The notes below the pieces were generated by a model. That model was not told where the DNA came from, made no database searches, and was given only the letters and a program-made list of their open reading frames with translations. Position numbers and translations under genes: made by a program. From assembly GCF_021028975.2 (NCBI RefSeq), contig NC_059428.1:8122001-8186000 (forward strand): a stretch of 64,000 nt of DNA, given 5' to 3'. Below, in pieces: positions 2,326-64,000 of this stretch (position 1 is the stretch's first letter; every line of letters starts with the position of its first letter). This DNA is from Sphaerodactylus townsendi (Eukaryota).

Positions 2326-3282
2326 ATGTCCTCCTCCAACGAGTCTCTTGGCCCCCCAGCTTTCTTCTTGACGGGCTTCCCTGGCTTGGAAAAATCCCAC
2401 ATCTGGATTTCCATCCCCATCTGCTCCATGTACTTAGTGGCCATTGCTGGGAACTGCACTATCCTCTTCATGATCCGGACAGACCCAACCCTCCATGCGC
2501 CCATGTACTCTTTCCTCTCCATGCTGGCCCTCTCAGACCTGGGCTTGTCTTCGGCCACTTTGCCCACCATGCTGAGTGTCCTTTGGTTCAACCACCGCCC
2601 GATCCACTTCGATGCCTGCCTGACCCAGATGTACTTCATCCACACCTTCTCCATTGTGGAGTCAGGGATCCTACTCTCCATGGCCTTTGATCGCTTGGTG
2701 GCCATCCGCAACCCGCTGAGATACACATCCGTCTTGACCAATGAAGCCGTCATCAAGATTGGGGTGGGGGTTTTCCTGCGAGCCGCCTTCCTTGTGTTCC
2801 CTGCTTCCTTCCTCCTGAAGAGACTGCAATATGGAAAAATAAATGTTCTTTCCTATTCATTCTGTTTGCACCAGGATATTCTGAGTGTGGTGCGCTCAGA
2901 CAGGAAAACGAGTAGCATCTATGGCTTGATGGTGGTGCTCACTTCCATGGCTACTGACTCTGTCTTGCTCATTGTGTCCTATATCCTGATCCTCACAACT
3001 GTGCTGAGCATTGCCTCCACAGTAGAGCGACTGCGGGCCCTGAATACCTGCATCTCCCACATCTGTGCAGTCCTTACCTTCTACATACCTATGATTGGTC
3101 TCTCTATGATCCACCGATATGGGAAAAACGCCCCCCCAGTGGTTCACATTCTCATGGCCAACGTCTACCTTTTGGTGCCACCCCTGATGAACCCAATTGT
3201 GTACAGCGTGAAAACAAAACAAATCAGAACACGGATCGTGAAAAAGTTCTGGAAGGGTAAAGGCTCCCGTGAAGCCGCTTAG
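2326..3282 (+). CDS. Class I olfactory receptor, OR51-like (intact, 318 aa)
   Basis: 7TM ORF with LHAPMYSFLSML, MAFDRLVAI, CLHQD, RALNTCISHICAV and PPLMNPIVYSVKTKQIR. ATG at 2326 (gccATG) follows a pyrimidine tract and AG acceptor (~2271-2287). N-terminal sequon NES. The ORF-track start at 2212 is probably an over-extension. Confidence 0.95.
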   Translation: MSSSNESLGPPAFFLTGFPGLEKSHIWISIPICSMYLVAIAGNCTILFMIRTDPTLHAPMYSFLSMLALSDLGLSSATLPTMLSVLWFNHRPIHFDACLTQMYFIHTFSIVESGILLSMAFDRLVAIRNPLRYTSVLTNEAVIKIGVGVFLRAAFLVFPASFLLKRLQYGKINVLSYSFCLHQDILSVVRSDRKTSSIYGLMVVLTSMATDSVLLIVSYILILTTVLSIASTVERLRALNTCISHICAVLTFYIPMIGLSMIHRYGKNAPPVVHILMANVYLLVPPLMNPIVYSVKTKQIRTRIVKKFWKGKGSREAA

Positions 3283-3479
3283 AACCACCATCTTGACCAA
3301 GACAGGGATGGATACATGTCTTTGTTTTTCTCAGGTCAGGGCTGTACCACTTCTGATATCACGCCAATGCAGGGAGAAATGCAGTGGTAGGCTGGGTTGT
3401 GCATTGTGCAGCCAAATGCTGCGTTGGTGCTTAGCTAGGGAATAATCAGCCTCTTTTCTCCCTCTCTCTTGAGAATAGA

Positions 3480-11302: not shown

Positions 11303-11459
11303 TTGCTGGGGACGGAGCGATGCACTGAATGGAGTTTGATCTGAGGCCGCAGAGCTCAGCCTCTTTGTGCTTTCTGCCAACAGATTTTGCCTCTGTGGTG
11401 CTATTTGTAAGTGATAATGTTCCTTTTGAAAGCGAAGGCAGCTTTCTCCTCCTCTTGAA

Positions 11460-12428
11460 ATGAAGGCTCCCCGCGGACATAACGCCTCTGCTCCCAACAC
11501 TGACTCCACCGTGTTCTTCTTGTCTGGTATCCCTGGGCTGGAAGATTTTCACATCTGGATCTCCATCCCTTTCTGCTGCATCTTCACCGTTGCCCTTCTC
11601 GGGAACACCCTCCTCCTTTATGTGATCAAGACGGACATCACCCTCCACAAGCCCATGTTTTACTTCCTCTCCATGCTAGGCTCAGTCGATCTGGTGTTAT
11701 CCCTCACGACCATGCCCAAGACGCTCTGCATCTTCTGGTTCAGGGCCAGGGAGATCAGCTTGAACGCCTGCCTGGTCCAGATGTTTTTCCTCCATGCTTT
11801 TTCCATCATGGAATCTGCCGTCCTCTTGGCCATGGCCTTCGACCGATATGTCGCCATCTGCCACCCGCTGAGGTACAACACCATCCTCACCCACTCAATG
11901 GTAGCCAAGGTTGGGCTGGTGGCCTTGGGACGGGCGGTCCTCTTGATGTCCCCTTTGCCTTTCCTCCTTCGCTGGTTGCCCTACTGCGGCTCCCATGTCA
12001 TCTCCCACTGCTTCTGTGAACACATGGGGGTGGTGAGGTTGGCCTGCTCCAACACACGATTCAACAACATCTACGGGATCATTGTGGCCTTCTTGGTTGT
12101 GGCTCTGGACCTGACTTTTATTTTCCTGTCCTATGCCAAGATCCTAAGAGCCGTTCTCAGCCTGGCTTCGAGGGATGAGCAGCTGAAAGCGCTTGGAACG
12201 TGTATCTCGCACCTGTGTGCCATGTTGATTTTCTATACCCCGGTGGTGCTTTCATCAATAATACACAGGTTTGGTCACCAAGTTGCTCCCCACATACACA
12301 TCCTGCTTACAAACTTCTACCTCCTCTTCCCACCCATGATGAACCCCATCATCTACGGGGTAAAAACCAAACAAATTAGAGAGTGCATCCTCCGCCTCTT
12401 CCACCGGAAAAGCTTCCAAAGGGTGTGA
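11460..12428 (+). CDS. Class I olfactory receptor, OR52-like (intact, 322 aa)
   Basis: FFLSGIPGLE, LHKPMFYFL, MAFDRYVAICHPLRY, CEHMGVVRLAC (OR52-type), KALGTCISH, PPMMNPIIYGVKTKQIR. Confidence 0.96.
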   Translation: MKAPRGHNASAPNTDSTVFFLSGIPGLEDFHIWISIPFCCIFTVALLGNTLLLYVIKTDITLHKPMFYFLSMLGSVDLVLSLTTMPKTLCIFWFRAREISLNACLVQMFFLHAFSIMESAVLLAMAFDRYVAICHPLRYNTILTHSMVAKVGLVALGRAVLLMSPLPFLLRWLPYCGSHVISHCFCEHMGVVRLACSNTRFNNIYGIIVAFLVVALDLTFIFLSYAKILRAVLSLASRDEQLKALGTCISHLCAMLIFYTPVVLSSIIHRFGHQVAPHIHILLTNFYLLFPPMMNPIIYGVKTKQIRECILRLFHRKSFQRV

Positions 12429-18196: not shown

Positions 18197-19144
18197 TTAG
18201 GGGCTCTTGGGTGAGACTATTCTGAGGATCCTGCTGTAGATTTGATTTGTTTTGATGCTGTAAATGATGGGGTTCATCAAGGGAGGGAGGAGGATGTAGA
18301 TGTTGCCCATGATGACGTGGAGAAGGGGAGAGGCGTGCCGGCCAAAGCGGTGCACGATGGAGAGCCCGAGCACCGGAACGTAGAAGACCAGGACGGCACA
18401 GACGTGGGAGACGCAGGTGCCCAGGGCCTTGTAGTGGCCATCAGCCCCAGAGGTCATGCCCAGGACCGCCTTCAGGATCAGGCTGTAGGAGATGAGGATG
18501 AAGAGGAGATCGGAGCCCATGGTGAGGAAGATGAGGATGAGAGCATAAAGGCTGTTGAAACTTGTGTTGGCACATGCCAAGCGTATCAAGTCCTGATGTA
18601 GACAGTAGGAGTGAGAAAGGGTTGCGTCCCGACAGTAGGGGAACTGTAGAACGAAAGGCAGGAGAGGCAATAGGAGCACGGTGCTTCTCAGCAGAAGAAT
18701 CAGCCCAGATGTGGCCACTCTGCTGGAGGTCACCAGAAGTGCGTACCTCAGAGGGAAGCGAATGGCCAGGAAGCGGTCTATGGCCATGGCAAAGAGCACA
18801 GCAGACTCCATGAAGGAGAAGGAGTGGACGATGAACAGCTGAGAAATACACACATATACGCTGACCTTCCTCAGCTGGAACCAGAGGACTCCCATGACGG
18901 TGGGCACGGTGGTGAGGCAGAGCCCCAGGTCGGTGGTAGCCAGCATGGCCAGGAAGTAATACATGGGCTGGTGCAGACCAGGCTCAGTCCAGATGACATA
19001 CAGAATGGTGCAGTTGCCCAGGGTGGCAACCAGGTAAGCAGAAAAGATGGGGATGCCGATCCAGTGGTGAACCATCTCCAGCCCTGGGAAGCCACTTAGA
19101 CCAAGCACTGGTTTGCTGGCGTTGGCGGAGGTGAATGACGCCAT
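18197..19144 (-). CDS. Class I olfactory receptor, OR51-like (intact, 315 aa)
   Basis: LHQPMYYFL, MAIDRFLAIRFPLRY, HSYCLHQDLIRLAC (OR51-type), KALGTCVSHVCAV, PPLMNPIIYSIKT. Confidence 0.95.
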   Translation of the reverse strand: MASFTSANASKPVLGLSGFPGLEMVHHWIGIPIFSAYLVATLGNCTILYVIWTEPGLHQPMYYFLAMLATTDLGLCLTTVPTVMGVLWFQLRKVSVYVCISQLFIVHSFSFMESAVLFAMAIDRFLAIRFPLRYALLVTSSRVATSGLILLLRSTVLLLPLLPFVLQFPYCRDATLSHSYCLHQDLIRLACANTSFNSLYALILIFLTMGSDLLFILISYSLILKAVLGMTSGADGHYKALGTCVSHVCAVLVFYVPVLGLSIVHRFGRHASPLLHVIMGNIYILLPPLMNPIIYSIKTNQIYSRILRIVSPKSP

Positions 19145-32742: not shown

Positions 32743-33704
32743 TCAGACTCTCTTGAGCGAAACTAATCTCAGTATTTTGCTGTAGATTTGCTTAGTTTTG
32801 ATGCTGTAAATGATGGGGTTCATCAGGGGTGGGAGAAGAATGTAGAAGTTGCCCATGATGACGTGGAGAAGGGGAGGGGCATGTTGGCCAAACCGGTGCA
32901 CAATGGACAGCCCGAAAGTAACTGAACTAGAAGACCAGGGACGGGCGCAGACGCGGAGACACAGGTGCCCAGGGCCTTGTGGTAGCCTTCCTTCCCAGAG
33001 GTCATGCCCAGAACTGTCTTCAGAATCAGACTGTAGGAGATGAGGATGAAGAGGAGATCAGAGCCCAGAGTGAGAACAATGACAATGAGGCCGTAGAACG
33101 TGTTGAAGGCTGTGTTCGTGCACGCCAGTCGGATCACATCCTGGTGGAGACAGTAGGAGTGAGAAAGGGTCGCACCCGGACAATAAGGGAAGTGCAGAAG
33201 AAACAGCATGGGGGCCACGAGCAGCGTGGTGCTTCTCAGGAGGAGGACCAGGCCAATTCTGAGAACTCTGCTCGTGGTCAGGAGAACTGTGTACCTCAGA
33301 GGATAGCAGATGGCCAGGAAGCGGTCCAGCGCCATGGCAAAGAGCACGGCTGACTCCATGAAGGAGAAGGAGTGGACGATGAACAGCTGAGCGATGCAGG
33401 GGCCTTTGCTAATGTCCCTCAGCTGGAACCAGAGGACTCCCATGACGGTGGGCATGGTGGTGGGAGGGCAGAGCCCTAGGTCGTGGTGGTGGCCAAAGCA
33501 TGGCTGTGGAAGTAATACATACATGGGCTGGTGCAGACCGGGCTCAGTCCAGATGACGTACAGAATGGTGCAGTTGCCCAGGGTGGCAACCAGGTAGGAG
33601 GAAAAGATGAGGATGCCGATCCACTGGTGCATCTCTTCTAGGCCTGGAAAGCCGGGCAGGGTAAATAGCGTGGCGCTCAGATTGGCTGCAGCGAACGATG
33701 CCAT
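32743..33704 (-). pseudogene. OR51-like gene with frameshifts (pseudogene or assembly error); close paralog of 18197-19144
   Basis: ATG at 33704 (MASFAAANLS). Indel patches at ~33460-33520 (net in-frame) and ~32915-32955. The C-terminus (..PLMNPIIYSIKTKQIYSKILRLVSLKRV*) continues in another frame to TGA at 32743-32745. Acceptor-like tgtttctccctattggactcctcag at ~33781. Confidence 0.88.
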
Positions 33705-33890
33705 AACGACCGGCCGATATCGCCTTCCAATTCCTCTGGAATTCACGAGGGACGGGAACAAGTGACAACTTCAAAAGCCACTGAGGAGTCCAATAGGGAG
33801 AAACACAGCATCACATTTTAACAATTGTTGGTTTACAGGAGAAGCAGCTGCAACCAAAGAACACTCTGCTCCTATTGATATGGACATATA

Positions 33891-44830: not shown

Positions 44831-45808
44831 ATGGCAGCTGTCAATCACACAAGCTTCAGAATAGTCAAATGCATCCTGGTTGGAGTGCAAGGCATGGAGG
44901 ATGCTCACCGCTGGCTTTCCGTCCCCTTCTGCTCCATGTACATAGTTGCGCTCCTGGGAAACAGCCTCCTCCTCTTCGTCATCATCACGGAGCGCACCTT
45001 TCACCAGCCGATGTTCTTCTTCTTAGCCATGCTGGCCAGTACTGACCTCGTGCTGTCTACCACCACCATGCCCAAGACGCTCGGCATCTTCTGTCTGCTA
45101 ACGCTTGAGATCGCCTTTTGAGGCTCATGCGGCCACTAGATGTTCATTATACATTTCCTCGTTTCGGCTGAGTCGGGCCATCTTGCTAGCTTTTCATGGC
45201 TCTACAATACCGTACTGCATTATCTGCGGTGATTCATCACTGCATTACAGCAACTGCGTTGACTCCTTCTTCCTGGATCAGCAAAAGATGGCGTCACAAG
45301 GCAGTGCTGGCCTTTTGCCTGATGGCTTCGCTGACCTTCCTCCTGCTGAGGCTGCCCTTCTGTGGCCCCAACGTCATTTCCCACACCTTCTGCGAGCACA
45401 TGGGGATCGCCCGCCTGGCCTGCGCAGACATCACGCTCAACATATGGTACGGCCTGACGGTGGCTCTCTTGACCACGGGAGCAGATGCCCTTTTCATTGC
45501 CGTCTCATACTGGGCTTGATCTTCCTCATTTCTGGGTTCGTGCCCCGGCCCAAACAGGCTCGGCCAAAGCTCGGACCCAAGTGGCTCTCACCTTCATGGC
45601 CATATTGATGTTCTATGTCCCGGCCTTCTTCTCAATCTTTGCATACAGATTTGCTGTGAACAGCATCCCTCGCCCAGTTCATATCTTGCTGGCCAACCTC
45701 TTTGCCATTGTGCCCCCCATGCTAAACCCCATCGTCTATGGGGTGAGGACCAAGCAAATCCGGCAGCGCCTGGCTCTGGTGCTTTTTCCTCCTAGGAAAC
45801 ACCACTGA
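44831..45808 (+). pseudogene. OR52-like (OR52B/D-type) gene with frameshifts (pseudogene or assembly error)
   Basis: accATGG at 44831. OR motifs are spread over several frames: [46 protein letters not shown]...PPMLNPIVYGVRTKQIR. Indels cluster at ~45090-45300 and ~45510-45590. Confidence 0.88.
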
Positions 45809-49422: not shown

Positions 49423-50928
49423 ATGTCCGACAGCGTCATGGTGGAAAGCCAGAAAATCTCCGGCGCGGACCTCAGGGCCACCACCGAGCCTCAAGTTGTC
49501 CGTGTCCTCGTAAAGGCCCCACGGCAGAAGGAAGAGTTTCTGGTCCACCAGGACATGCTTGTGGGAGAGTTCAAGGAACACATAGGCCGGCATTTCTCCT
49601 CTTCCCCTGACCGAGTCGTGCTGGTGTACGCCGGAAGGATCTTAAAAGACCACAAGACCCTGGGCCAGCACAGGATCCACCTCGATGATGACGCCACCAT
49701 CTTCGTGGTCCTCCGGTCCCACCGAGTGCCACAACCCCGACAAACCTCTGCCGTTCTGCCCCACCCGGCCTTGGGCCAGAAGCCCCACCCCAGTAGCGCT
49801 TTTCCCATGGCTGGCTCATGGGAGCTGATCACAGCCTGGGCCTCAACACGCCACCTGCTGTGGGAGTTCCAGACCCAGCTGATGTCCGATCCGGACCTGA
49901 TGCTCCGGCTCCTGGAAAACCCGTTCATCCAGAGCAAGCTCTCCCGCCCCGACCTGATGAAGGAGCTGGTCACCAACAACCCCCAGGTGCAGCAGGTGAT
50001 TCAGAAAGCGCCCGAGATCAGCCATGTCTTCAGCTCTCCAGAGGGCATGAAGCTGGTGGTAGAGCTGGCCAGGAACCCGGCGGTTGTGCGGGAAATCATC
50101 AAGCCTCCCCCTCAGGCCTCCGACTTCCCCAGCGGAGACAACAACGGCTCCCAGCCGGGACATTTCGTCGAGACGCCAGGCCTGCTGCACAAGGGCCTTC
50201 CGAAAAAGGGGTCGGCCAGCTCTGGCAGTGGCCACCCACCCACCCACCCCTGTGAAAAGCTGTCTGCTAAAGAGAGGTCGCTTCTGACCGGTGTCCGGCC
50301 TCCAAGGCCGGGTGCCCAGAACATCAGCTCTGGTGGCCACGATCAAAGTCACGAGGAAGGCGGTGGAGTGAAGGAAGAAGCTGGGCAGATGGTCTCCACA
50401 GCGGTGAAGAACCTGCTCCACCAAATCATACGGCACCTCCTGGAGAACGTTGCCAGCAGCCCTAGCAGGAACACCGCCGGTCAGGTGCTCAGCCATGCCC
50501 CAGAGCTGGTGGCCAAGATGATCCGGAAGAACGCCACGGTGCCCAGGAACTCCCGAGAGCAGGCCGCCACGCAGATCCCGGCCCTGCTGCAGCAGATGCA
50601 GAGCCCAGACATCTTCTGGGCCAACTGGAGTCCAAAGGAGATCCAGGGACTGCTAGAAATCCAGCAGCGGCTCCAGGCTCTCTCTGCAGACGAGCCAGCG
50701 AAAAGACCCCACCGAGACGAGCGGCCCGTGCGGAGGGCGCACTCCAACACGTCTCTCTGTGATATCGGACCCCCTGCCTCCAGGGTGGGGCACCAGGGCT
50801 TCTCTGCCCAGAGGATCTTGCAGGCTCTGGTGGGCGCAGATTGGGCAGCCGGTGCCAAACCCCTCAGCAACTTGCGGGGCTCTTCGGCCCAGCCCTCCTC
50901 CAAGCAACAGCGGACCTACAAGCTCTGA
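49423..50928 (+). CDS. Intronless ubiquilin-like protein 1 (UBL + STI1-like segments, no in-frame UBA)
   Basis: UBL: VRVLVKAPRQKEEF...VLVYAGRILKDHKTLGQH. STI1-like: LMSDPDLMLRLLENPFIQ..NNPQVQQVIQKAPEISHVFSSPEGMKLVVELARNPAV. C-terminal QIPALLQQMQSPD..IQGLLEIQQRLQAL matches the ubiquilin QLP.FLQQMQNP..QALLQIQQGLQTL segment. Stronger Kozak ATG at 49438. ATTAAA at 51031. Confidence 0.92.
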   Translation: MSDSVMVESQKISGADLRATTEPQVVRVLVKAPRQKEEFLVHQDMLVGEFKEHIGRHFSSSPDRVVLVYAGRILKDHKTLGQHRIHLDDDATIFVVLRSHRVPQPRQTSAVLPHPALGQKPHPSSAFPMAGSWELITAWASTRHLLWEFQTQLMSDPDLMLRLLENPFIQSKLSRPDLMKELVTNNPQVQQVIQKAPEISHVFSSPEGMKLVVELARNPAVVREIIKPPPQASDFPSGDNNGSQPGHFVETPGLLHKGLPKKGSASSGSGHPPTHPCEKLSAKERSLLTGVRPPRPGAQNISSGGHDQSHEEGGGVKEEAGQMVSTAVKNLLHQIIRHLLENVASSPSRNTAGQVLSHAPELVAKMIRKNATVPRNSREQAATQIPALLQQMQSPDIFWANWSPKEIQGLLEIQQRLQALSADEPAKRPHRDERPVRRAHSNTSLCDIGPPASRVGHQGFSAQRILQALVGADWAAGAKPLSNLRGSSAQPSSKQQRTYKL

Positions 50929-52775
50929 GTTGGAGAAGGCGGGAAGCGGAGACGGCGGCGGAAGGAGGCCTTTCCTGGCTCCCTGCGCTGCAGCCAGAGC
51001 TTCGTACGAGGATGAATTTCATGATTTCGGATTAAAAAGCTTTACGTATTTCAAAGGATCTCCTGTGTTGATTTCTTCTGCAGGTGAGGGAGGCGTTTGC
51101 CAACCGCTGCTTGGGAGATTCCCAGAGATTTGGGGGCAATACCAGGGGAGGGACTTCTCTTCCAAAGCTGCCATCCCATCTGGAGAACTCCTGCCCACCC
51201 AGCTTGAAGAGCAGCTAAGAGGAGCGTGGTGTAGTGGTTAAAGAGCAGGGGGATCAAGTCCGATTACTCCTCCACATGAGCGGCAGAGTTTCATCTGGTG
51301 AACTGGATTTGTTCCCCCCTCCTACACATGAAGCCTGCCGGGTAGCCTTGGGCCAATCACAGAACTCTCTCAGCCCCACCGACCTCACAAGGTGCCTGTT
51401 ATGGGGTGAGGAAGAAGAAGGAGTTTGTAAGCTGCCTTGAGTCTCCTTTCGGGAGAGAAAGGTGGGATATAAACCCAAAACTCATCTCCTTTTGAGATAG
51501 TAAATCTGAGGCAAACAGAAAGTTTCGTTTTGTAGGGAGAAGTCTGCTAAGGAGTCATCCCATTTTATCCAGAGGCAACATCAGAGGCCACCCAAGAAAG
51601 CCCAAGAAAGGAAAAATATCAGTCTCTTCCCTTTTCATCCCAGCTTTCTCCAAGGAGCGGCCAAGGCCTTCCAGTTACCTTTATGGAAGAGTGGAGATTT
51701 GGCCCCAAGCATCTCTCATTCTAGTTCCTGAGGGAGAAAGAATTCCAGGGAGAGCTTCCAGAGCTCATGGTGCCATCAGTCTCCTGCCAGCATGGCCAAT
51801 TGGCCATGCTGGCAGGGGCTGATGGGAATTGTACTCCATGAACATCTGGAGTGCCATAGGTTTGCCACCACTGTTCTAGTTCAATACCATAACCACTGCA
51901 TGATATTACCTTCCCACTGTTGCTCTTTGGCCATGGGGAGGAGATGCATGGGGAGGAGCTGTGGCCCAGTGGAAGAGCCTCTGGAAGTTGTGGGGGGGTG
52001 CTCTCTGCATGCTCCACTTTCCAAATCTCCAGGTATGTCCAAGACAGGAGCTGGAAACGTGGGTTAATATATTCAGTGGAGATACTTAGCGGCAGAGATG
52101 CGGACGCAGTCTCATGTGGAAAACGAAAGACTATAGCCAGAGATACTTTGAGTTGCTTTTGGCATAAAAATAGCTTGCTAGCTTAAAGGAAGGGTTACAT
52201 GGAATAAAACAACAAACGCTGTACTGTTCTGTTACACATTTACAGCATTGATTACAATCTAGGACTACATCTCGTTGTCTATCTGCTATCTCGCCTTGCG
52301 GCTCTAAACATGTGTGTTGAACAAAGACAACAGGTAACTTTATAACTTCAGATACATGTGCTTACTAACATGTAAGCAATGGTAGTCTGACTGACCAATG
52401 GCTAATCAATAGACCAGATCATAGAACAGCTTATTTACAGACAGACAGTTAACCCCTTAGTAACTGAATTGTGAGCGACACGTGCAAATACCAACACAGA
52501 AACCGTCAGTTTAGTCTTCCCAGGATGCCCAAAGACAAGAAGAGATAAAAGCAGGCTTGGTGGAGGAGTCAGCCCATGGGTCATCGGGGTCTGCTGCCAA
52601 CAATAAATCCCACTGAACAACAAAGTTAGTTTCAAAGGGTGCCCATGTTGGTCTGCCCTACAAGAGCTAGATTCCAGTTCAGTAGCACCTGAGAAACCAA
52701 CAAAAAGACCTGGGTAGAAGCTTTCAGGCGTGGAAGTCATTGGATGAAGGGCACTTTGGCTCTCCAAAGCTCATA

Positions 52776-53275
52776 TCGTGTTTCCCCAAAAATAAGGCAG
52801 GGTCTTATATTAATTTTTGCTCCAAAAGATGAGTTAGGGCTTATTTTCAGGGGATGTCTCATTTTTCCCCCCATGATTTTGCACCCCCCCCCCCCACGGG
52901 ACCAGATCACCTGAGCCAGGGAATCTGCAACTACCCTGTTTCCCCGAATATAAGACATCCCCTGAAAATGAGACGTGGTCGAGGTTTTGCTGAAGTGCGA
53001 AATATAAGGCATCCCCCGAAAGTAAGACGTAGCAAAGTTTTTGTTTGGAAGCATGCCCGACAAACAGAACACAGAAAAATAAGACATCCCCTGAAAATAA
53101 GACATAGCGCATCTTTGGGAGCAAAAATTAATATAAGACACTGTCTTATTTTTGGGGAAACACAGTAGGGCTTATTTTGGGAGTTGGGCTTATATTTCAA
53201 GCATCCTCAAAAAAAATCCCAAAAAATCATGCTAGGGCTTATTTTCGAGTTGGTCTTATTTTTGGGGAAACAGGG
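52776..53275. mobile_element. Tc1/mariner-type MITE with a nested related MITE (52934-53165)
   Basis: Outer TIRs cgtgtttccccaaaaataag / cttatttttggggaaacaggg, TA flanks; inner copy has its own TA flanks. Confidence 0.85.
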
Positions 53276-54331
53276 TACTTCAAAAACCGTGCTGATCATT
53301 AAATTGCTACTGGACTCAAATCTAGCTCTCCTAAACCCAAGACTTCCAGCAATTTCAACAGATATCTCAGCTGAATTATAAACAACACAGGGGTGAAAAA
53401 TGTCATGCTTAAGGTTCTTTTCTAACTTTCTAGGGAAAACTTTCTGTGTCCAGTGAAATGGGGCCTGAAGACGAATGAGTGGTCGCTCCGTTGCCTCCTT
53501 TTAAGTAGACTGGGCAGATCACTCTTGCTTCACTCCCTATGGTGTGAAATACAAATCTGGATCCACTTCCCAATCCTCCCCACCGATCTGGATTGGACAC
53601 GTGTTTTCTGAAAAGGTGCTCAATCATGCAGGTCCTAGGAAAACACATGATAAGGGGTCGAGGGAGCGCCAGAACCGGGATGAAACCGTATTCGGCAGTG
53701 TTGCTGTGGGGTTTCGTCCTGAAACCCGGGTATTTCGGGTGACTATCATGGGATTATTCGCCAGTGGGGATTCGACTGAGGGTGCAGGGTACCAATGTTG
53801 TAATGCATTTTTAAAAGGCCATTTATTGCCCCCTGCCCTCCTTATGGACCTCAAGTACAAATTAAATACATAAGACAAGGAACATAACATATGCAAAACC
53901 AACATTTTTAAAAACCACAGTTTAGGACCACTTTAATCAAAGGCAGCCCCTAAATCGAACCACCTTCAGCTGCCTCCTGATGATCGAAAGGGAGGGGCCA
54001 CGCACTCTTCTTGGAGGAGGCTCCTCTGTAATTGTGGGGCAGCCACCAAGAAGGCCCCTACATGTGTGCATCCAACGGGATTCTTTGCTCGATGGCACGG
54101 TCAGGAGGGCCTCTCTGGGTGACCTTAATTCCCAGGCAGGAGGTGTTTGTCCCAAGCCACGTAGCCACTGGGTGTCAGATGTTACGCTGGCCGTGGGTTC
54201 CAAAGCTGCCTGCTCCCCCTCTGCAGTGGCCAAAGAGAGTCCAAATGCAAAGTGATGAAGGCTGTCCCTACCACAGTGGAAATGGGGAAGGGGCTCTCCT
54301 TGCCACTTTCTGAGGTCTTTAATGCTGGCAG

Positions 54332-54351
54332 TGACCTCACCTGTGATGTCA
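54332..54351. promoter_or_regulatory. Two CRE-like octamers (TGACCTCA, TGATGTCA) upstream of ubiquilin-like 2
   Basis: About 165-180 bp upstream of ATG 54514; similar motifs at 49209-49216 and 63556-63563. Confidence 0.4.
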
Positions 54352-54513
54352 CAGTGACCCTCCCCTTGCTGCCACTCCTGAGCAGCAGCCTGGTTCAGGA
54401 GAAACGGAGGGCAGAAAGGAGGGCAGCGAGGGAGGGAGGGTGGAGCCTGGTTGGGAGGGGCTGCGATGCACCTTCGGCGGCTTCTTCCCCACTTCCTTCG
54501 GCCTCGAAGCATC

Positions 54514-55911
54514 ATGGACATTCTGGGCAAAGGTCAAGAAGGCTCGGTCCCCTGCCCGGTCATCGCCAGCAACCCCAGTTTCATCTGCGTCACGGCCAAG
54601 TCCCCCCAAACAACTGCCAAGTTTGTGCTCCCCGAGACCTGCACGATCCTGCAGTTCAAGGAAGAGATCGCCAAGCGCTTTGGCTGTGAGCCCAGCCAGC
54701 TGGTGCTGGTGTTCTTTGGGAGGCTCCTGAAGGACCAAGCCACCCTCTGGCAGTGCGGGATCAACGACGGGATGACCGTCCACATGGTGATCCGGGCCCA
54801 GCAGAGAGACCCGGAAGATCCGCCTCAGCTGCTGCCGTATGCCCCCAGGAACCCCGGATGTGCCCAGGCGCCCTCCCACAGCACCCTCCGTTCCGCCCCA
54901 TTCGGCCCGAGCGGCCAGGGCTCCTGGGGGCCTCCAGAGGCAACCCTGGCCCACTTGGAGTGGCCGCCGGTGCCCACGTCAGAGATGATCGTCCAGAAGG
55001 TGCGGCAGGTGATCCTGGCCAACCCGGAGATCCAGCAACTGGCCCAGCAGGTCCCGTCCATCAGCCACATTCTCAACAACGCCGACATCATGCGGGTCAT
55101 CTTGGACAAGATGCGGGAGATCATGGACCTGGCCCGGAGCCCTGAGATGATGCCGGACCTGAAGGGTGCGGACCAAGCCCTGGTCAGCCTCCAGAGCAAC
55201 ATCCCCGGCGGGGACAACCCCTTGAGGCAGCTGAATGGGGAGGTGCAGGAGCCCGGGCTGAACGTGGGGCAGGACGGGCCCAATCCTTACGCCACCTTGG
55301 GGAGAAGCCCTTGCCAGTACCCGGAGCAGGGCACCCTCAGGGGCCAGGTCCCCCGCCCGGATAGCCAGGACTGCGTGGCCCCCCAGCCTCTGGCCTCTCA
55401 GAGCACCACCAGCTTTTGGGGCGACGAGGGCGGCATCTCCAACCGCTGGGTGGGTGTCCCTCTGGGGCCCAGCCCCTCCGCGGCCAGCCTGACGCACTGC
55501 TCAGGAGCTGAGCCATTCGGAACGGGGGGTATCCGGAACCCAGACCCCGCCGAGATCCCCCTGATGATCGTGAACCTTTGCAACGCCTACACCAAGCGCG
55601 TGATGATCTCCCTCATGCAGAACGCGCTGCTGGCCTCCCAGAACGGGCAGGTGGGGCAGCAGGAGCAGATCAAGGACCAGGTGAGCAACCTCTCCCAGCA
55701 GATGCAGAGCCCAGAGATGACGGCGGCCATGTCCAACCCCACGGCCATCCAGGCCTGGGTGCAGATGGAGCAGGGACTGCAGACCCTCCTGGCCGAAGCC
55801 CCCGTGCTCGTCCCCTGGTTCATGCTGCGGCTGCGAGGCCTGGAGAACACGGCCGGAGGGGGCCAGGGGGCCGGGGCCCCTTCCTGCCAAGGCCCGGTCA
55901 TTGCTGAGTAG
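54514..55911 (+). CDS. Intronless ubiquilin-like protein 2 (UBL + STI1-like segments, no UBA)
   Basis: UBL: ICVTAKSP..QFKEEIAKRF..QLVLVFFGRLLKDQATL..GINDGMTVHMVIR. Also ILANPEIQQL..ISHILNNADIMR, IPGGDN, and QQMQSPEMTAAMSNPTAIQAWVQMEQGLQTLLAEAP. Strong Kozak atcATGG at 54514; in-frame upstream ATG at 54466. Confidence 0.93.
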   Translation: MDILGKGQEGSVPCPVIASNPSFICVTAKSPQTTAKFVLPETCTILQFKEEIAKRFGCEPSQLVLVFFGRLLKDQATLWQCGINDGMTVHMVIRAQQRDPEDPPQLLPYAPRNPGCAQAPSHSTLRSAPFGPSGQGSWGPPEATLAHLEWPPVPTSEMIVQKVRQVILANPEIQQLAQQVPSISHILNNADIMRVILDKMREIMDLARSPEMMPDLKGADQALVSLQSNIPGGDNPLRQLNGEVQEPGLNVGQDGPNPYATLGRSPCQYPEQGTLRGQVPRPDSQDCVAPQPLASQSTTSFWGDEGGISNRWVGVPLGPSPSAASLTHCSGAEPFGTGGIRNPDPAEIPLMIVNLCNAYTKRVMISLMQNALLASQNGQVGQQEQIKDQVSNLSQQMQSPEMTAAMSNPTAIQAWVQMEQGLQTLLAEAPVLVPWFMLRLRGLENTAGGGQGAGAPSCQGPVIAE

Positions 55912-56260
55912 GGGGGCCGGCCCTTCCACCTCCAGAGGGGCTGTGGGTCTTCTCACCTTCTCAGGCCCCAGAAACCAAACCTGGCCGAGGAACGGAGTCT
56001 CTGACGCGGACGGGAGAGCCTTCTGCAGCGGAACTGTTGGGAAAGAACGGAGGCCACCCCCCAGCGGCGGGGGTGAAGCCGAGCCTCGGCCATGGCGGCC
56101 GCAGGTGCCTGTGATGCGTGGAGTGGGACCCAGACACTCCTGTGACATAAAGAGAAACCACCACCCCCTCTCCCTTGCTTTGTCAACAGCTCTCATTCCT
56201 TTGGGGGAGGCGGGAGCAAGCGTGGGGGGTTGGGGGGCAGGGGTGGGGGCAAGCTGCCTG

Positions 56261-56791
56261 TGTAACCTCTAAGTTCTGTGGGGCAGAACTTGGAATGAGT
56301 TTGCAACAACAAATTTTAAAAACAAAATGGTTTACTTTCTTAACACATAACATCAAACATCAACATTTAACATCACACTTCAAGGTCCTGTTCAGGTTTG
56401 CATTTTCAAGTCCTTCTATTTACAGTCTTCTGATACTGCCAAGTCCAATTCTTCTTTGCAAGTGGGCTGGCTCCTGAAGACTCCAAGGGCTTGGTGAACA
56501 GGATTCAACATGATGAAGGTTTCCAGGAGAACTCTCACCCATCACAACCACAAAAAGAAAACCCTGAAACAATAAACTCCCACATTTACAACATAGCAAA
56601 AATAAACTACCACCTTCCCAGTAGTTCCCAACAACATTGCAGTTACTTTAACAAGGTGTTAAGGGCTTATACAAACCAAGGTCCGAGTCTGGTAGCCTCA
56701 TCTCCTCCAAACTACATGAGCTCTGCAGCCTCCTGCTGCTTTGAGTCTCCACCCCTTTCTGGGTCAACCCATTCTGAGCATGGGGGTTACA
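56261..56791 (-). mobile_element. Solo LTR, family A (long variant)
   Basis: Reverse-complement copy, TSD CCTG, 350 bp downstream of ubiquilin-like 2. Confidence 0.9.
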
Positions 56792-57104
56792 CCTGCAGCA
56801 TCAGGAGGAAAAGGGGGTGCAAGTGAGGGTGGGGCAGGCGGTCATGTGGGGTGGGTCCAAAGATGTCGTTTCTCCTGCCTTTGCCTGCAAAACACATCAG
56901 TGGGCAGCTTCTCCGAAGCGTGCTTGTAGCAGATCCTGCAGCATACAGCTGAAGGGACACTCCCACTGTGGAATAGCGCTTGATGCCAACTTTAGGCTTG
57001 GAAATTCCTGGAGACTCAAAACATGCAAATTGGTGCCATGCTGTAGCGTGGAGGTTCCACAGTGAGGACCTCGCTCTTGGATCAGCAGAGGAAGATGGGA
57101 ATGG

Positions 57105-57340
57105 ATCGTCGAAGACTTTCACAGATGGATTCAACTGGTTGTGGTGGATTTTCCGGGCTGTGTGGCCGTGGTCTGGTGGTTCTTGCTCCTAACGTTTTGC
57201 CTGCATCTGTAGACATAGTGTCTCATAGACTTCTCTCTGTGATACACCTCTGAAGATGCCAGCCATAGATGCAGGCAAAATGTTAGGAACAAGATCCCCC
57301 AGACCACGGCCACACAGCCCGGAAAACCCACCAGAACCAG
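57105..57340. mobile_element. Penelope-like terminal-repeat fragment in inverted arrangement (related: ~28990-29130, 43291-43382)
   Basis: gtcgaagactttcac..ttttccgggctgtgtggccgtgg and the inverted ccacggccacacagcccggaaaac; ctctgaagatgccagcc..gatgcaggc core. Confidence 0.72.
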
Positions 57341-58685
57341 AAGACGGAAATGTCCTCACTCTAGTTTTTGAGTGTTGTGGTTTTGGTTTTTTTAAAAAAA
57401 TCTTTATTTACATTGTTAAAATAACAGTGTAAATGAACACTTTTCACATTTAAAAAAAACCATAAAATTATTTCTGCATTTAACAAAACACTGCCCAAAC
57501 CAGCTCCTACCTAAGCATTTTGATATATAATATTATTATGATTTTTGTTCAAGTCACTGTTAAATAATCCTTAAACAATTTTTCTTCCCTACGAAACTCT
57601 GAAGAGATACTGTCTGTGAGAGTGATATATTCCACTTCAGAACTTTTAAAGTTATTGTTGATACCATATTTATTTATTTATTTCTTGGTTGAACTTATAT
57701 ACTGCCCTCCCCCGGAGGGCTCAGGGCGGTGAACAACAAAAGAAAATAGAGCACATAAACCAAAGACTAAAATCCGGTAAATATTAATTAAATTGGCTCT
57801 ATATAAATAAAATAACCCCACCCCATTAAAACGCAGCATACTAAAATCACCCTTGACTTCTACTCAAGTCAATAAGTTTTCCCAGTTTTTTGTGGTAAAA
57901 ATTAGGTGCCTCGACTTATACGCGGGTCAACTTGTACACAAGTATATACGGTAATATGTTCTACAGAGTGTGGTAGTTTTTAATGTCTTATGTCCATTTC
58001 TTCTTTTGTGCAGGGACTGACCTGTTTGTCGGATGTTATGTCGTGATCTGATCCTGCCCGGGACCTGGGCAGACCCCCCCCCCCCACTCAGTTAAACTAT
58101 TTTCCTTTTCTCAGACCTGTTATCACCTCGTATTCCACCTGCCATTACAACTTTCTCAATAACATAAAATATAGGTTATTTTGACCCTAGTGGGGGGGAG
58201 GTGGTTTCTCCTTCCAGCAGACTGTTGGACTGGGGAGATAACGCCCCCCCCCCGCCCCCGCCCCCCCGGGGACTAGTCAACGGGGTGGGGTGACAGGACA
58301 TAGGAATGACATGAGATGTAATAATGCTTACAATATTGACTATACTCCATTCTGACAATATAAATCTAAACATTCATTTCCTAATGCTATTCCATAATAA
58401 AGAAATCAACTAAAACCCAAGTCGTCTTATACGACTGACAGGCCATTCCATTAATTTCCCAGGTTATTCTACTGCTGACCTCTGAGTTGCCGTCCTCAAA
58501 CAGCAAAGCAAAAGGGGCGACTATAACGCAAGATTGCTGAACTTGGGATCATTCAAAAAATTAAAAACAATGCCCCCCCACCCCCCGCTGCATAAGACAT
58601 AGGATTCTTATCTCAATTCAGATAGTAATTTTCTACCCTGCACTATTTCTTGGCATGTATACCCCAGTCTTATAAGATCTAAATG

Positions 58686-59240
58686 GAGGGATGTAATTGT
58701 ACCTCTCTATTCTGCATTGGTTAGACCTCACTTGGAATATTGTGTCCAGTTCTGAGCATTGCAATTCAAGAAGGATATTGACCAGCTAGAACAGGTCCAG
58801 AAGAGGGCAACCAAAATGGTCAAAGGTCTGGAATCCACGCCCTACGAGGAGAGACTTGGGGAGCCGGGGATGTTTAGTTTGGTGAAGAGAAGGTTAAGAG
58901 GTGACATGATAGCCATGTTTAAATATTTGAAGGGATGTCGTGTTGGTGAGGGAGCAAGCTTGTTTCCTGCTGCTCCAGAGATGAGGACCAGGAGTCATGG
59001 GTTCAAGGAGCAGGAAAAGAGATCCCACCTAAACATCAGGAAGAACTTCCTGACCATCAGGGCTGTCTGACAGTGGAATGCGCTGCCTCGGAGGGTGGTG
59101 GAGTCTCCTTCTTTGGGGGTTTTTAAAGAGAGGCTGGATCAGCATATGTCGGGAGTGCTTTGATTGTGTGTTTGTGCGTTGCAGGGGGTTGGACTGGATG
59201 GCCCTTGGGGGTCTCTTCCAGCTCTATGATTCTATGATCT
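58686..59240 (+). mobile_element. CR1 LINE 3' fragment (second subfamily)
   Basis: FKKDIDQLEQVQKRATKMVKGLE..YEERL; (ATTCTATG) tail. Confidence 0.9.
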
Positions 59241-59864
59241 TGGGAACCAAGCAAGGCTGGTACTTGGAAGGAGGACCCCCAAGGGAGACTCTGCAGAGGA
59301 AGGCCACAGCAAACCGCCTCTACTTCTCCTTTGCTTTGGAAGCCCCTTGCTGGGATCACCGTACGTTGGTTGTAACTTGGAGGCACTTGACGCACACACA
59401 CCACACGCACACACAAGCATTTGATTTCCCCTTTGTGCTACCCAAGCTGACTGCAGTGTGCATTGTCACCCTGACTTGCTTATTCACAACAGGGCCCCCC
59501 CACCCCCTTCTAATAGGGATCTGAGGGCTCAGGGACCTCCTTTCCAACTGGTGTCTGACCAAAGGGAGATCTGACTGAGGAGAGCAGGCACCCGGAAAAT
59601 GCCAACGTGTCTCAGTGCTCCTGGACTACGGACCTGACTCTTCTACTGCAGACTAGGACGGCCACCCTTAAAACGATCCTCAAGACACAGCAGCTGTTCC
59701 AGCTGACCTGGTCCACCATCCCATTAAACATAAGGATTTGGAAGCGGGCCGTTCCTTTCCATAACTCTCACTCTCTTGCAAGTTTGGCGATAACATCACA
59801 AAAGGCGGCTGAGAAGATGCATCAATAACAGTTTCAAATGAGATGGGTTTTAGAATGCTGCTTA

Positions 59865-60613
59865 TGTGAAAAAGGCAAACTCTATGCTGGGGATCATTAG
59901 GAAAGGAGTTGATAATAAAACTGCAAAGATTGTCATGCCCTTATATAAAGCAGTGGTGCGACCGCACTTGGAGGACTGTGTCCAGTTCTGGTCGCCACAT
60001 CTCAAAAAGGATATTGAGGAGATAGACAAAGTGCAGAGAAGGGCAACAAGGATGACTGAAGGATTGGAGCACCTTCCTTATGAGGAGAGGCTGCAGCGTT
60101 TGGGACTCTTTAGTTTGGAGAGGAGACGTCTGAGGGGGGATATGATTGAAGTCTATAAAATTATGCATGGATGGTAGAAAATGTTGACAGGGAGAAATAC
60201 ATTGAAAATACTAGAACCAGGGGGCATCCATTGAAAATGCTGGGGGGAAGAATTAGGACTAATAAAAGGAAACACTTCTTCAGGCAACGTGTGATTGGTG
60301 TTTGGAATATGCTGCCACAGGGCGTGGTGATGGCCACTAACCTGGATAGCTTTAAAAGGGGCTTGGACAGATTTATGGAGGAGAAGTCGATTTATGGCTA
60401 CCAATCTTGATCCTCTTTGATCTGAGATTGCAAATGCCTTAACAGACCAGGTGATCAGGAGCAACAGCCGCAGAAGGCCATTGCGTTCACATCCTACATG
60501 TGAGCTCCCAAAGGCACCTGGTGGGCCACTGCGAGTAGCAGAGAGCTGGACTAGATGGACTTTGGTCTGATCCAGCTGGCTTGTTCTTATGTTCTTATGT
60601 TCTTATGTTCTTA
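59865..60613 (+). mobile_element. CR1 LINE 3' fragment
   Basis: [30 protein letters not shown]; (TTCTTATG)n tail. Confidence 0.92.
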
Positions 60614-61699
60614 TTCTGAGTTATGCATTTTAACTATTTATCACTTATGTATTGTGCACATTGTTTTAGTTGTGGTTTTGTTGTACACCGCCCAGAGCCC
60701 TTCGGGGGTGGGCAGTTTATCAAATTTAATAAACAACAACAACAACTTGCATTTCGGAACTCAGTGGTGGATGTGCCTGTGTTTTTGCACCTGGAAAAGA
60801 AGAACTGTGTGAATGCCCTCTGGCCCCCCTCACACCCAGGATCCTGGCAGGATGTGTGCCCCCCCCCCCCGCCAGCCCTTTCCGGCAGACCCCCTTCCTG
60901 TGTAGCCACATTTAGATCCAGAGAGAGGTTGCTGCTCCTGCAGTTGGAGGCTCTATGGGCTGAATTCTGTCCAGGGCCAAACAGACCTGGGCAAAAGGTC
61001 CTGCTGTCTCCAGCCAATGAGCTCAGAGGGCAAGAAGAGTCGCTGGCCACCTGCGGCCCACCCTGGCTGGCTGTCCTCAGGGTGGGATCCCAGCACAAGG
61101 TTCACTGGGGCATCCCCCTTTAGGGAGGCTGGTGGTGGGATTTCCTCCCGCAGGCTCAGCAGAGTTCATATCCTTTCATATGAGGCTTTCCTGGAGGAAA
61201 TGGGAGCTTTGGAGGGTGGGCTGTATGGTTTTGTCCCTTGCTGAAGCCCCTCCCCTCCCCAAACCCCGCCTCCCACAGGCTCCGCCCCCACACCCCCAGC
61301 TGTTCCTGGAGCTGCAACCTCAGCATTAGTTCTGCCCCCTCCTGCTGCTGCAAGGCCCTTTGGGACTCCCGTGGGCTCCTGGCACGGGGCTGCTGTCGTG
61401 TCGGAATATTTCCGGCATGTCCCAGAGACATCCTCGCCCTCCGCCTTCTTGCCCCCTTGTGCCCCTGTGCTTTTCCCGGCCTGGGTTGACCGCTGGTCCC
61501 GGGCAGGTTGGGTCCACTCTCCTCCTGCGGCTGGAGCAGAAGTCCTGCTGAGTCCTGCCCAGAACCTGGAGGAGAAGAAAGGGGGGCTTTGCTGGAGGAA
61601 CTCAACCTCGTGGGCCGGTTTTGAACCTCTCCAGCTTATGAGCTGGTTTTGTATTGATCTTTTCCTCTTTGAGAGGGAGTTTCAGGCAATTCCCGGGAA

Positions 61700-62395
61700 A
61701 CAATCCACATGAGAAACAGGCAACCTAGAAAAGCTTGATAAAACCTGGAAGATATATATATAGACTATAAGAAAAATTGTAATAAATAGGTTTTTTTGTC
61801 GTTATAGTAGATTATGTTACACGGTTGGTATTTTATAATTAGTGCATACTAAGAGACTAGGTACAATAGAGTATCTTATGTTATGTTATGTATTACTCTC
61901 ACGAGTTAGAACATCTAATCTGTATAGTTGTCGTACTTTTTTAAAAATAACTCTGAAGATGGGAAACTCCTCTTCATCTCTTATGAAGATCAGAAGTAAA
62001 ATGTTATTAACCAGTTAAATCTTTATGTTTAGATAACTTCTTCTGTCACCTTTTTCCTTCTCTCCCCCTTTCCCCTATCCCTCACCTCTATACATCTTTC
62101 TTCTTTTTTGCTTCCCTCTCTTATCCTTTCTTGTTACTTTCTCATATCCTATCTCCAATCTTTTCCTATAATCAATGGAAATACAAGTCCCCTCTTGCCT
62201 CTAAACTTTTACTCTTGTTTCCTCTTTCTCTCTTACTCTTACTCTCTTCTCTGCTTTCTACTCTCTGTTTCATCATTATCTGCTCTTTTTTTCTGTTGTG
62301 TTTTGTTCCCAAATGACAAGTTATGCTAAATGGATGTAATAATTTCTATATATTTTAAACCTAATAAAATTATTTATAAAAAAGAAAGAAAGAGA
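61700..62395 (+). mobile_element. Probable L1 3' UTR with A-rich tail
   Basis: AT/pyrimidine-rich stretch ending aataaaattatttataaaaaagaaagaaag. Confidence 0.5.
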
Positions 62396-63845
62396 AACAG
62401 GCGTTCCACAGGGGCCACGGCTCAGTGGCATGGAGAGGAAAGACTTTTCATCAAGGCTTGCCCCGAGGTCAGTTAAGTGGCTCCACCCCCCACCCCAATC
62501 ATCTTTGGGGGCAGGGGAGGCCTTCCTCACAGACCTGCCCCGGGACCTCGAACCACCTCTTCTTCGGGCCTTCTCTCAACCTTCACAGGCCAAGTTTTGG
62601 GCTGCCCCCGCCTTCTTTTCCTTCAGGTAAATAATTAATAACACCTCTGGGGACTGGGAGGTATCTGGGGGCTTCAGGATAGGAGCATCAGCAGGGCCTG
62701 GATTTTGCAGTAGATCCCAACCCTGTGTGCAAGTCTTTTGATGAGAGGATTGTGTGTTGGGGGGGGGAGTGCAGCTGTGACCTCGTCCTTGTCCCCACAG
62801 TGATGCTGAGGGTGGCCAGCTTCACAATGGGGAATTCCAGGTGATTTGGGGGTGGAGACCAGGGCTGGCGGAGTTTGGGGAGGGGAGGTAGGTCAGCAGG
62901 GCTGTGAAACCCTCTGAAACGACCTTTTCCTTCTGAGGAAGTGATCCGTATCTTCTGAAGAGCAGTTAGAATTAGAGTTGCCCAATTCAGCCTGGGAAAT
63001 TCCAGGAGATTTTGGGGTGTTGCCTGTGGTGGAGGGGAATTTGGGGAGGGGCTTCGCCTAGCATCTGTGGCATACCATCGAGCAGGGGTCTTCAAACTAT
63101 GGCCCTCCAGATGTTCATAGACTACAATTCCCATGAGCCCTACCACTTGGCCATGCTGGCAGGGGCTGATGGGAACTGTAGTCCATGAGCATCTGGAGGG
63201 CCATAGTTTGAAGACCCCTGCCATAGACAGTCTGCTCTCCGATGCTGCCATTTCCTCCAGAACGGACCTCTGCTTTTTGCAGATCCACTGTAATTCCATG
63301 GTCCACCTTGATTTTGGCAACCCTAGCATCTTTGAGTGATGGTGGAGGGATGGCCAACCTTGATTTTTTTGGGGGGGAGGAGGTTTGAAAGGTTGCAGGA
63401 GCGGTACTTTATATCAGGACCATATTTCATCAGCCCCTGCCAGCATGGGCAATTGGCAGGGGCTGATGGGAATTGTAGTCCATAACATCTGGAGTGCCAA
63501 AGGTTCGCCACCACGGCCCTAGAGGGATTTCCCAGCAGTGGTCCCTGGTTCTCTGTGAGGTCAGCAGTGATGCTGCAGCCCCTGCAGGAGCACAGAGAGG
63601 AAAGGACAGGTCAGCAGCAGCAGCAGAGGGCAGAGGAGGACCATGAAGGAACTTGCCAGGTTGTGAGTGGGCAGACAAGAAGGGCACCATCTCACTGGCA
63701 CTCTGGCCTTGGCTAGTGTTGAGACCCAGTGGCCCCTGGCAACCGCTCACCCACCCACCCACAGGGGGAGAAGAGCCCTTCCCGGATTCTCCTTGGACCT
63801 CTGCTCCTCCGGACGGCACCACCACCAGCAGGCCTCTGAGCAGCC

Positions 63846-64000
63846 ATGGCGGAGAAAAAGAAGCCCCCGAAACGGAAAGCTGCCAACCTCCACGTCATCA
63901 AAGTGACGGTCAAGACCCTGAAGCGCAAGGAGCAGTTTGACGTCTCCGAGGAGACCCTGGTGCAGGACTTCAAGAGGCAGCTCTCCGAGCGCTTCAACAC
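63846..64000 (+). CDS. Ubiquilin-like protein 3, 5' part only (runs off window)
   Basis: gccATGG at 63846 translates to MAEKKKPPKRKAANLHVIKVTVKTLKRKEQFDVSEETLVQDFKRQLSERFN, matching the ubiquilin UBL start (KVTVKTPKEKEEF..VQQFKEEISKRF). Absent from the ORF track because no stop lies in the window. Confidence 0.9.
   Translation, partial: MAEKKKPPKRKAANLHVIKVTVKTLKRKEQFDVSEETLVQDFKRQLSERFN

Follow-up and report, generated by a model that had tools for sequence, protein, structure and literature searches.

We analysed a window of 64,000 nucleotides from the gecko Sphaerodactylus townsendi (NCBI RefSeq assembly GCF_021028975.2, contig NC_059428.1, positions 8,122,001 to 8,186,000 of the forward strand), in which five class I (OR51/OR52-type) olfactory receptor (OR) genes or pseudogenes precede three ubiquilin genes on the plus strand, here called A, B, and C. 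In our reading, to which we assign a probability of roughly 0.8, the window contains the gecko copy of an old and conserved array of three intronless ubiquilin genes embedded in a class I OR cluster. The first-pass annotation of this sequence had described three highly diverged ubiquilin-like genes on the same strand, directly after OR51/OR52 genes, and had noted that two of them were complete single-exon open reading frames (ORFs) of about 470-500 codons. The domains of the proteins, the 25% identity between A and B (over 457 residues, E = 1e-25), and the class I scores of the OR tested bear out this description, and the two complete frames encode 496 (A) and 465 (B) residues. The ubiquilin features of the window are:

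49438..50928, plus strand: ubiquilin copy A, single-exon, 496 aa, with UBL, STI1-type domain, and second helical block, but no UBA
49807..49863, plus strand: suspect assembly patch inside A, with compensated small indels
54514..55911, plus strand: ubiquilin copy B, single-exon, 465 aa, with UBL and STI1-type domain, but no UBA
63547..63845, plus strand: 5' flank of copy C, about 74% nucleotide identity between geckos (blastn match of 63547-64000 to Paroedura L001:17066-17550)
63846..64000, plus strand: ubiquilin copy C (UBQLN6 type), first 51 codons including the start of the UBL; runs past the window end

Structure and conservation of the ubiquilin genes

The reading frame of A spans 49420-50928 with a first ATG at 49423; the start at 49438 agrees with the orthologs and with the genome annotation, and the gene is recorded on CM037617.2 of GCA_021028975.2. 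The frame of B (54451-55911) is open from a TTG at 54451, and the ATG at 54514 is the start supported by orthologs. Pfam searches identified the ubiquitin domain PF00240 in both proteins (A, 5.7e-11; B, 1.1e-15), as well as the ubiquilin-specific PF23195 (A, 2.1e-25; B, 1.9e-11), indicating that an STI1-type/ubiquilin-1-like helical domain is present. The nearest named orthologs of A and B, with 80-83% identity, come from the gecko Euleptes europaea.

An AlphaFold (AF2) model of A, built from 29 relatives, predicted a beta-grasp UBL at residues 25-97 (predicted local distance difference test score, pLDDT, 70-90), a helical domain at residues 144-226 (pLDDT 72-81), and weaker helices at 317-344 and 385-422. 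The rest was predicted to be disordered, and a C-terminal three-helix bundle was not seen in the model. A and B also share the conserved second, C-terminal helical block, which can be aligned to its counterpart in canonical ubiquilins.

Copy C starts with an ATG at 63846 in a third frame, and 51 of its codons lie before the window ends. Over these codons it shares 71% identity with residues 1-51 of the C protein (584 aa) of Paroedura picta (tblastn), and the encoded residues align to the UBL start of C-type orthologs. In the genome annotation, a single 1148-aa product (L002:15029-21491), in which the UBL and PF23195 each occur twice, covers both B and C. This fused gene model is an annotation error, since B ends at a stop codon of its own and C opens at a conserved start of its own, behind a conserved 5' flank. 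Searches of the window with C-type, UBQLN1, and turtle protein queries found no ubiquilin fragment beyond A, B, and C.

The short segment 49807-49863 inside A deserves separate comment. Contigs from three public runs all depart from the assembly there via small indels. The motif ..ASLGLNTAN.. is present in 15 of 15 A orthologs, from squamates to Alligator, and in the window it lies at this position in frame +2; the assembly frame reads unlike every A ortholog. The segment is probably misassembled, with indel errors that compensate each other. The ORF of A is open either way.

The ratio of nonsynonymous to synonymous substitution rates (dN/dS) in comparison with Paroedura was 0.26 for A (95% bootstrap confidence interval (CI) 0.19-0.34, doubtful patch removed; dS 0.57) and likewise 0.26 for B (95% bootstrap CI 0.20-0.34; dS 0.45). 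In both genes, constraint was strongest in the UBL, the STI1-type domain (dN/dS 0.07-0.15), and the C-terminal helical block. The first-pass annotation had left room for unexpressed genes with dN/dS near 1; with intervals of about 0.19-0.34, the estimates stay well below that value. The suspicion that A and B are decaying or otherwise non-functional relics, with ORFs kept by chance and without expression, draws on their fast-evolving, low-complexity linkers, on low AF2 confidence outside the domains, and on the loss of the UBA domain. However, ORFs of 460-500 codons have stayed intact in dozens of species that are up to about 280 million years (Myr) apart, selection on the domains is strong by the dN/dS values just given, and the 5' flanks are conserved between geckos, including about 240 nt upstream of B that are also conserved in comparison with Paroedura. 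We consider the relic explanation very improbable, and conclude that A, B, and C are real genes, of which A and B have intact frames that evolve under purifying selection.

Sauropsid orthologs and the mammalian trio

Homologs were collected by an exhaustive search of representatives plus name look-ups; P0179, a match under a human name, entered no analysis. Orthologs of A were found in geckos, other lizards, snakes, turtles, Alligator, and Rhea, orthologs of B in squamates, turtles, Alligator, tinamous, and emu, and orthologs of C in geckos, vipers, turtles, Alligator, a tinamou, and the neognath Podargus. In the main maximum likelihood (ML) tree (IQ-TREE, LG+C20 with posterior mean site frequencies (PMSF), 61 proteins, 572 columns), clade support, expressed as ultrafast bootstrap/Shimodaira-Hasegawa (SH) approximate likelihood ratio test, was 100/100 for A, 100/100 for B, 96/96 for C, 100/100 for UBQLN3, and 100/99 for UBQLNL. 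A FastTree analysis with better sampling recovered all seven groups as monophyletic. The neighbourhoods of the orthologs were as follows:

Paroedura: A, OR, B, C, OR
Alligator: A (inverted), OR, B, C, within 19 kb
Tinamou Eudromia elegans: intact A, B, and C ORFs on one strand, within 12 kb, between ORs
Turtle Malaclemys: A between two ORs

The order A-(OR)-B-C is common to geckos, Alligator, and a tinamou. Shared clades together with shared gene order in these lineages imply that the triplication is older than crown sauropsids. A recent or squamate-specific origin, either by retrocopying of UBQLN1 or UBQLN4 or by a squamate-only expansion in an OR cluster, would fit the database names of the genes ("ubiquilin-1-like") and their intronless structure. 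It is refuted by the trees and maps: A, B, and C each include sequences from turtles, Alligator, and birds, the same gene order recurs in Alligator and in the tinamou, A and B are just 25% identical, and the UBQLN1 proteins of geckos and anoles fall in the distant UBQLN1 clade. The first-pass annotation had named recent UBQLN1/4 retrocopies as an explanation to be checked, and this explanation fails, as each of the three gene types is common to squamates, turtles, crocodilians, and birds.

One of the three genes has been named before. Marín (2014, PMC4230246), in the one evolutionary study devoted to the ubiquilin family, introduced UBQLN6 as a sauropsid-specific duplicate, based on a few divergent reptile and bird sequences; squamates were not in the set, which comprised alligator, turtles, duck, and pigeon, and the paper did not say where in the genome these sequences lie or connect them with the UBQLNL group. 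The UBA strings that its UBQLN6 alignment gives for alligator and turtle recur in the C-type proteins P0119 and P0244, and judged from these matches UBQLN6 and the lineage of copy C are one and the same. The window copy itself was placed in the UBQLN6 lineage by its 71% identity over 51 residues and by its conserved position. In the literature searched, no other paper used the name UBQLN6. Copy C and UBQLN6 are thus the same gene, with a UBL-STI1-UBA architecture in C-type orthologs; what is new here is that UBQLN6 occupies the third place of an array in the OR cluster and occurs in geckos and snakes.

A and B, by comparison, appear to be undescribed. The trees of Marín (2014, PMC4230246) were built from UBL and UBA domains only, and A and B were probably overlooked because genes without a UBA cannot be placed in such trees. 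A review devoted to sauropsid beta-globin clusters and the ORs flanking them contains no mention of ubiquilins, and no report of ubiquilins was found in the searched literature on sauropsid beta-globin/OR synteny.

For mammals, the same paper (Marín, 2014, PMC4230246) described UBQLNL, UBQLN3, and UBQLN5 as tandem, testis-specific genes, dated them after the mammal-sauropsid split as a mammal-specific expansion, and credited monotremes with UBQLNL alone. The first-pass annotation was right that OR-embedded intronless ubiquilins are described in the literature as a mammalian expansion (Marín, 2014, PMC4230246). In our data, echidna (Tachyglossus) and pangolin both have UBQLNL, UBQLN3, and UBQLN5, in this order and on one strand. 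The intact UBQLNL-like, UBQLN3-like, and UBQLN5-like ORFs of Tachyglossus lie in tandem at L010:4114-5454, 10001-11524, and 16435-17853. Monotremes therefore already have the full mammalian trio, which corrects the UBQLNL-only account. The pangolin trio adjoins a TRIM gene.

Two gene models in these mammals call for caution. The echidna protein P0254 resembles a fused model of two of the trio genes. In the pangolin (Manis), the UBQLNL model (L009:3222-4890) contains 10 stops, and similarity is confined to two pieces, 3222-4148 and 4411-4836, so that by its sequence this gene could have become a pseudogene, or its model may have been patched.

In FastTree analyses, A, B, C, UBQLNL, UBQLN3, and UBQLN5 formed one clade (0.94-0.96 SH-like support) apart from UBQLN1/2/4, and all identified members of this OR-linked clade come from amniotes. 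The mammalian genes resemble the sauropsid ones in this clade membership and in their single-exon coding sequence. They also form a same-strand tandem trio with spacing of a few kb, located within or beside the class I OR/TRIM region, and like A and B they have fewer STI1 repeats and linkers that evolve fast. The sauropsid array is homologous to the mammalian testis ubiquilins at the level of the clade and of the locus. Because the clade, the intronless coding sequence, and the position in the OR cluster are shared, the simplest origin would be one retrocopying event into the OR cluster, before the amniote lineages split. OR-embedded intronless ubiquilins are an amniote-wide clade, not restricted to mammals as published, and a conserved three-gene array of the sauropsids' own, with UBQLN6 as one member, has existed since before the lizard-bird split. 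The phylogeny and microsynteny proposed as checks in the first-pass annotation gave the A, B, and C clades, the OR flanks, and the TRIM neighbour in pangolin; in approximately unbiased (AU) tests, more than one way of pairing them with mammalian genes survived.

These tests were done on a second data set, in which FastTree subtrees were combined with an AU test of 29 fixed backbones, a procedure less thorough than free mixture-model searches. The best ML backbone was ((A,(B,(UBQLN5,UBQLNL))),(C,UBQLN3)), which interleaves sauropsid and mammalian clades. As regards one-to-one orthology, several pairings as well as independent triplication survived, and order-preserving pairings fitted poorly.

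A number of points weigh against our overall reading. Only 51 codons of copy C lie inside the window. Monophyly of the whole OR-linked clade is moderately supported (0.96 in FastTree, with a matching split at 77/75 in the PMSF tree), and the absence of the clade outside amniotes is judged from no more than the top 150 representatives. Support for the backbone that joins the six gene types is weak, and a sauropsid-only clade of A, B, and C was not rejected (p-AU 0.19). Of nine trees with independent triplications, eight had p-AU values of 0.09-0.21 (0.18-0.21 for the best) and one had a value of 0.035. Finally, going by titles cited in PMC7040208, the mouse Ubqln3 and Ubqlnl single knock-outs are reported to show these genes to be dispensable for spermatogenesis.

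The first-pass annotation had offered two origins for the array, either before the mammal-reptile split or by independent expansion of the same retrogene in squamates. This choice proved too narrow. A squamate expansion is contradicted by the presence of the trio, in the same order, in Alligator and tinamou, and the older array is favoured by ML, with eight of the nine independent trees surviving beside it. A triplication in stem sauropsids is a third option, and a plausible one. We regard one gene and several genes at the mammal-sauropsid split as about equally likely. It is quite conceivable that a single OR-embedded ubiquilin was present at the amniote split and gave rise to A, B, and C in stem sauropsids and to UBQLNL, UBQLN3, and UBQLN5 in stem mammals. 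The AU tests failed to reject such separate triplications, with the best joint independent tree 22 log-likelihood (lnL) units worse. Moreover, each lineage has kept its own gene order for roughly 200-300 Myr, and pairings that preserve this order (A/UBQLNL, B/UBQLN3, C/UBQLN5, or the reverse) had p-AU values from 0.0505 down to 3e-6. Stable order within each lineage, combined with the poor fit of order-preserving pairings, counts somewhat for independent triplication. However, all nine independent trees were 22-30 lnL units below the best backbone, and B grouped with UBQLNL in the PMSF tree (88/75) and with UBQLNL plus UBQLN5 in FastTree (0.94).

The competing scenario, to which we give the same weight, has at least two genes in the array before the mammal-sauropsid split, a UBA-keeping ancestor of C and UBQLN3 and an ancestor of B, UBQLNL, and UBQLN5, with A lost in mammals and the order reshuffled later. 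Such an ancestral array matches the ML backbone, and the one-to-one pairing (C,UBQLN3),(B,UBQLNL),(A,UBQLN5) had a p-AU of 0.39. On the other side, support for (C,UBQLN3) was just 0.16-0.67, and slow evolution and UBA retention on both sides could account for this grouping. The arrays, otherwise stable in their order, would have had to be rearranged, and independent triplication survives the AU tests.

Several observations concern the gene complement of individual sauropsids. In Eudromia elegans, the intact A-type (L006:2413-4083) and C-type (L006:12868-14670) ORFs flank the annotated B-type gene and are missing from the called genes. Turtles have a fourth, long-branched, UBA-bearing paralog, P0261 (Gopherus, L011:10001-11635), of the same lineage as "Nuevo_Chrysemys" in the alignment of Marín. 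Its placement was unstable between trees (sister to the C clade or elsewhere), and no neighbours of the Gopherus gene were seen within 10 kb. In Varanus komodoensis, about eight A-type-like proteins clustered in the first tree (P0023, P0028-P0033, P0080, P0087), which by sequence suggests either an expansion in monitor lizards or several models of few genes. The protein taken as "B" of Varanus also belongs to this A-type-like cluster.

Loss of the UBA domain and a possible mode of action

Pfam detected no UBA domain in A or B, and a hidden Markov model (HMM) of ubiquilin C-termini scored -1.6 and -1.8, compared with 64-120 for UBA-bearing ubiquilins. According to this HMM, a UBA is present in all C-type sequences examined but one and in all mammalian members (64-114 bits); the short C-type sequence P0331 gave no UBA match. 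The domain is absent from A of squamates, Alligator, and Rhea and from B of squamates. Archelosaur B retains a UBA stub (8-12 bits). In turtle A, a clear UBA core (29.9 bits) lies directly past the stop codon in another frame (Malaclemys L005:11256-11755), and the turtle gene models P0038, P0039, and P0042 take in this core past the A stop. Three explanations would fit the out-of-frame UBA of Malaclemys A: a recent loss by frameshift, an error of the assembly, or a small intron. It follows from the distribution of these matches that the UBA was lost after the triplication, separately in A and in B, stepwise, and at different times in different lineages.

We also considered a frameshifted UBA vestige at the end of A in the window. 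BLAST gave an out-of-frame match at about 50817-50963 (E 0.09-0.6). The HMM score was 0.4 bits; shuffled sequences reached 1.4 at the 99th percentile and 2.5 at most. The match is not significant, and the same holds for B.

Canonical UBQLN1/2/4 consist of a UBL, four STI1 repeats, and a UBA, and are multi-exon, broadly expressed proteasome/autophagy shuttles. A and B share with them the hydrophobic-patch positions of the UBL, the PF23195/STI1-type domain, and the second helical block. They differ in that they lack the UBA, are intronless, occupy another locus, and have only 20-37% identity to the canonical proteins. Their dN/dS is also far higher than would be expected, from tree branch lengths, for the near-invariant UBQLN1. 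The mammalian UBQLNL group differs from A and B in that all members examined keep the UBA. By their domain content, A and B are ubiquilin relatives with a variant architecture, not canonical UBL-UBA shuttles.

The domains suggest a tentative mode of action. As read from the sequence, the UBLs of A and B have conservative residues at the positions of the ubiquitin hydrophobic patch, and could dock on receptors of the proteasome or on receptors with ubiquitin-interacting motifs (UIM). The STI1-type domains of canonical ubiquilins (UBQLN1/2) are the parts that bind clients and self-associate, and the STI1-type helical domains of A and B might likewise hold hydrophobic or unfolded clients. Lacking a UBA, A and B would not bind ubiquitin chains in the usual way. 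Because of the missing UBA, they may be ubiquitin-independent holdases or shuttles, or else competitors or modulators of canonical ubiquilins.

By analogy with the mammalian testis ubiquilins, A, B, and C are probably expressed in male germ cells; in the literature searched, we found no paper on reptile ubiquilin expression, and a search for sequencing runs of this gecko gave four entries of unknown kind, all from one study and none marked as RNA. A further analogy is Drosophila CG31528 (PMC4230246), a testis-expressed, fast-evolving extra ubiquilin beside a conserved housekeeping one. Unlike A, B, and C, it is of unrelated origin and genus-specific. A more ambitious proposal would be that the amniote ancestor, more than 300 Myr ago, had at least two OR-embedded intronless ubiquilins, and that A and B are functional UBA-less proteins that do not need to bind ubiquitin chains and serve in male germ cells as holdases docking on the proteasome or as antagonists of canonical ubiquilins, with the repeated, stepwise loss of the UBA being adaptive rather than a form of decay. 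This combination seems unlikely to hold in full.

The suggestion of the first-pass annotation that the array could be a new system goes too far. The genes are family members with a variant architecture, they are automatically annotated as ubiquilin-1-like, and C is already known as UBQLN6. The array corrects a published evolutionary model and is not a new kind of system. Its interest lies in A and B as two old, selectively kept lineages without a UBA, natural experiments on what a ubiquilin does without ubiquitin binding, which bear on the workings of UBL and STI1 domains in the disease genes UBQLN1/2/4. The practical yield is modest, and consists of better names than "ubiquilin-1-like" and of the repair of a fused gene model.

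Olfactory receptors and repeats in the window

Upstream of the ubiquilins, four long OR ORFs matched Pfam 7tm_4 (1e-66 to 1e-117), one of the four being frameshifted, and a broken OR was found in addition. These and the other features of the window are:

2212..3282, plus strand: class I OR gene, 356-aa ORF (Pfam 7tm_4, 1.4e-111)
11460..12428, plus strand: class I OR gene of OR52/OR51 type, 322 aa (7tm_4, 7.5e-117)
18197..19144, minus strand: OR gene, 315 aa (7tm_4, 5e-105)
32746..33761, minus strand: class I OR with a frame break near 32913-32955 (7tm_4 profile covered at 5-214 of 280 only)
44876..45790, plus strand: broken class I OR with several frame changes (tblastn pieces in differing frames)
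51223..53422, strand not applicable: high-copy interspersed repeats in the A-B spacer (summed contig depth in millions, many joints and loose ends)

The assignment to class I is exemplified by the OR at 11460..12428, which scored 423 bits against consensus OR52, 410 bits against OR51, and at most 166 bits against class II structures. In the OR at 32746..33761, the tblastn match resumes in a different frame at 32913-32746, and this gene is probably a pseudogene. The genome annotation shows a 203-aa 7tm_4 fragment at 44876..45790. This broken OR (44876-45790) lies next to two N gaps, 43575-44112 and 44250-44656, with low-complexity, purine-rich sequence on their flanks.

The spacer between A and B measures 3.6 kb and is mostly high-copy repeat. 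In the window this spacer is without an OR gene; Paroedura and Alligator both have an OR between A and B. Between B and C, on the plus strand at 59854-60407, lie two overlapping ORF pieces that we take to be related to the C-terminal part of ORF2 of a long interspersed nuclear element (LINE) of the CR1 type.

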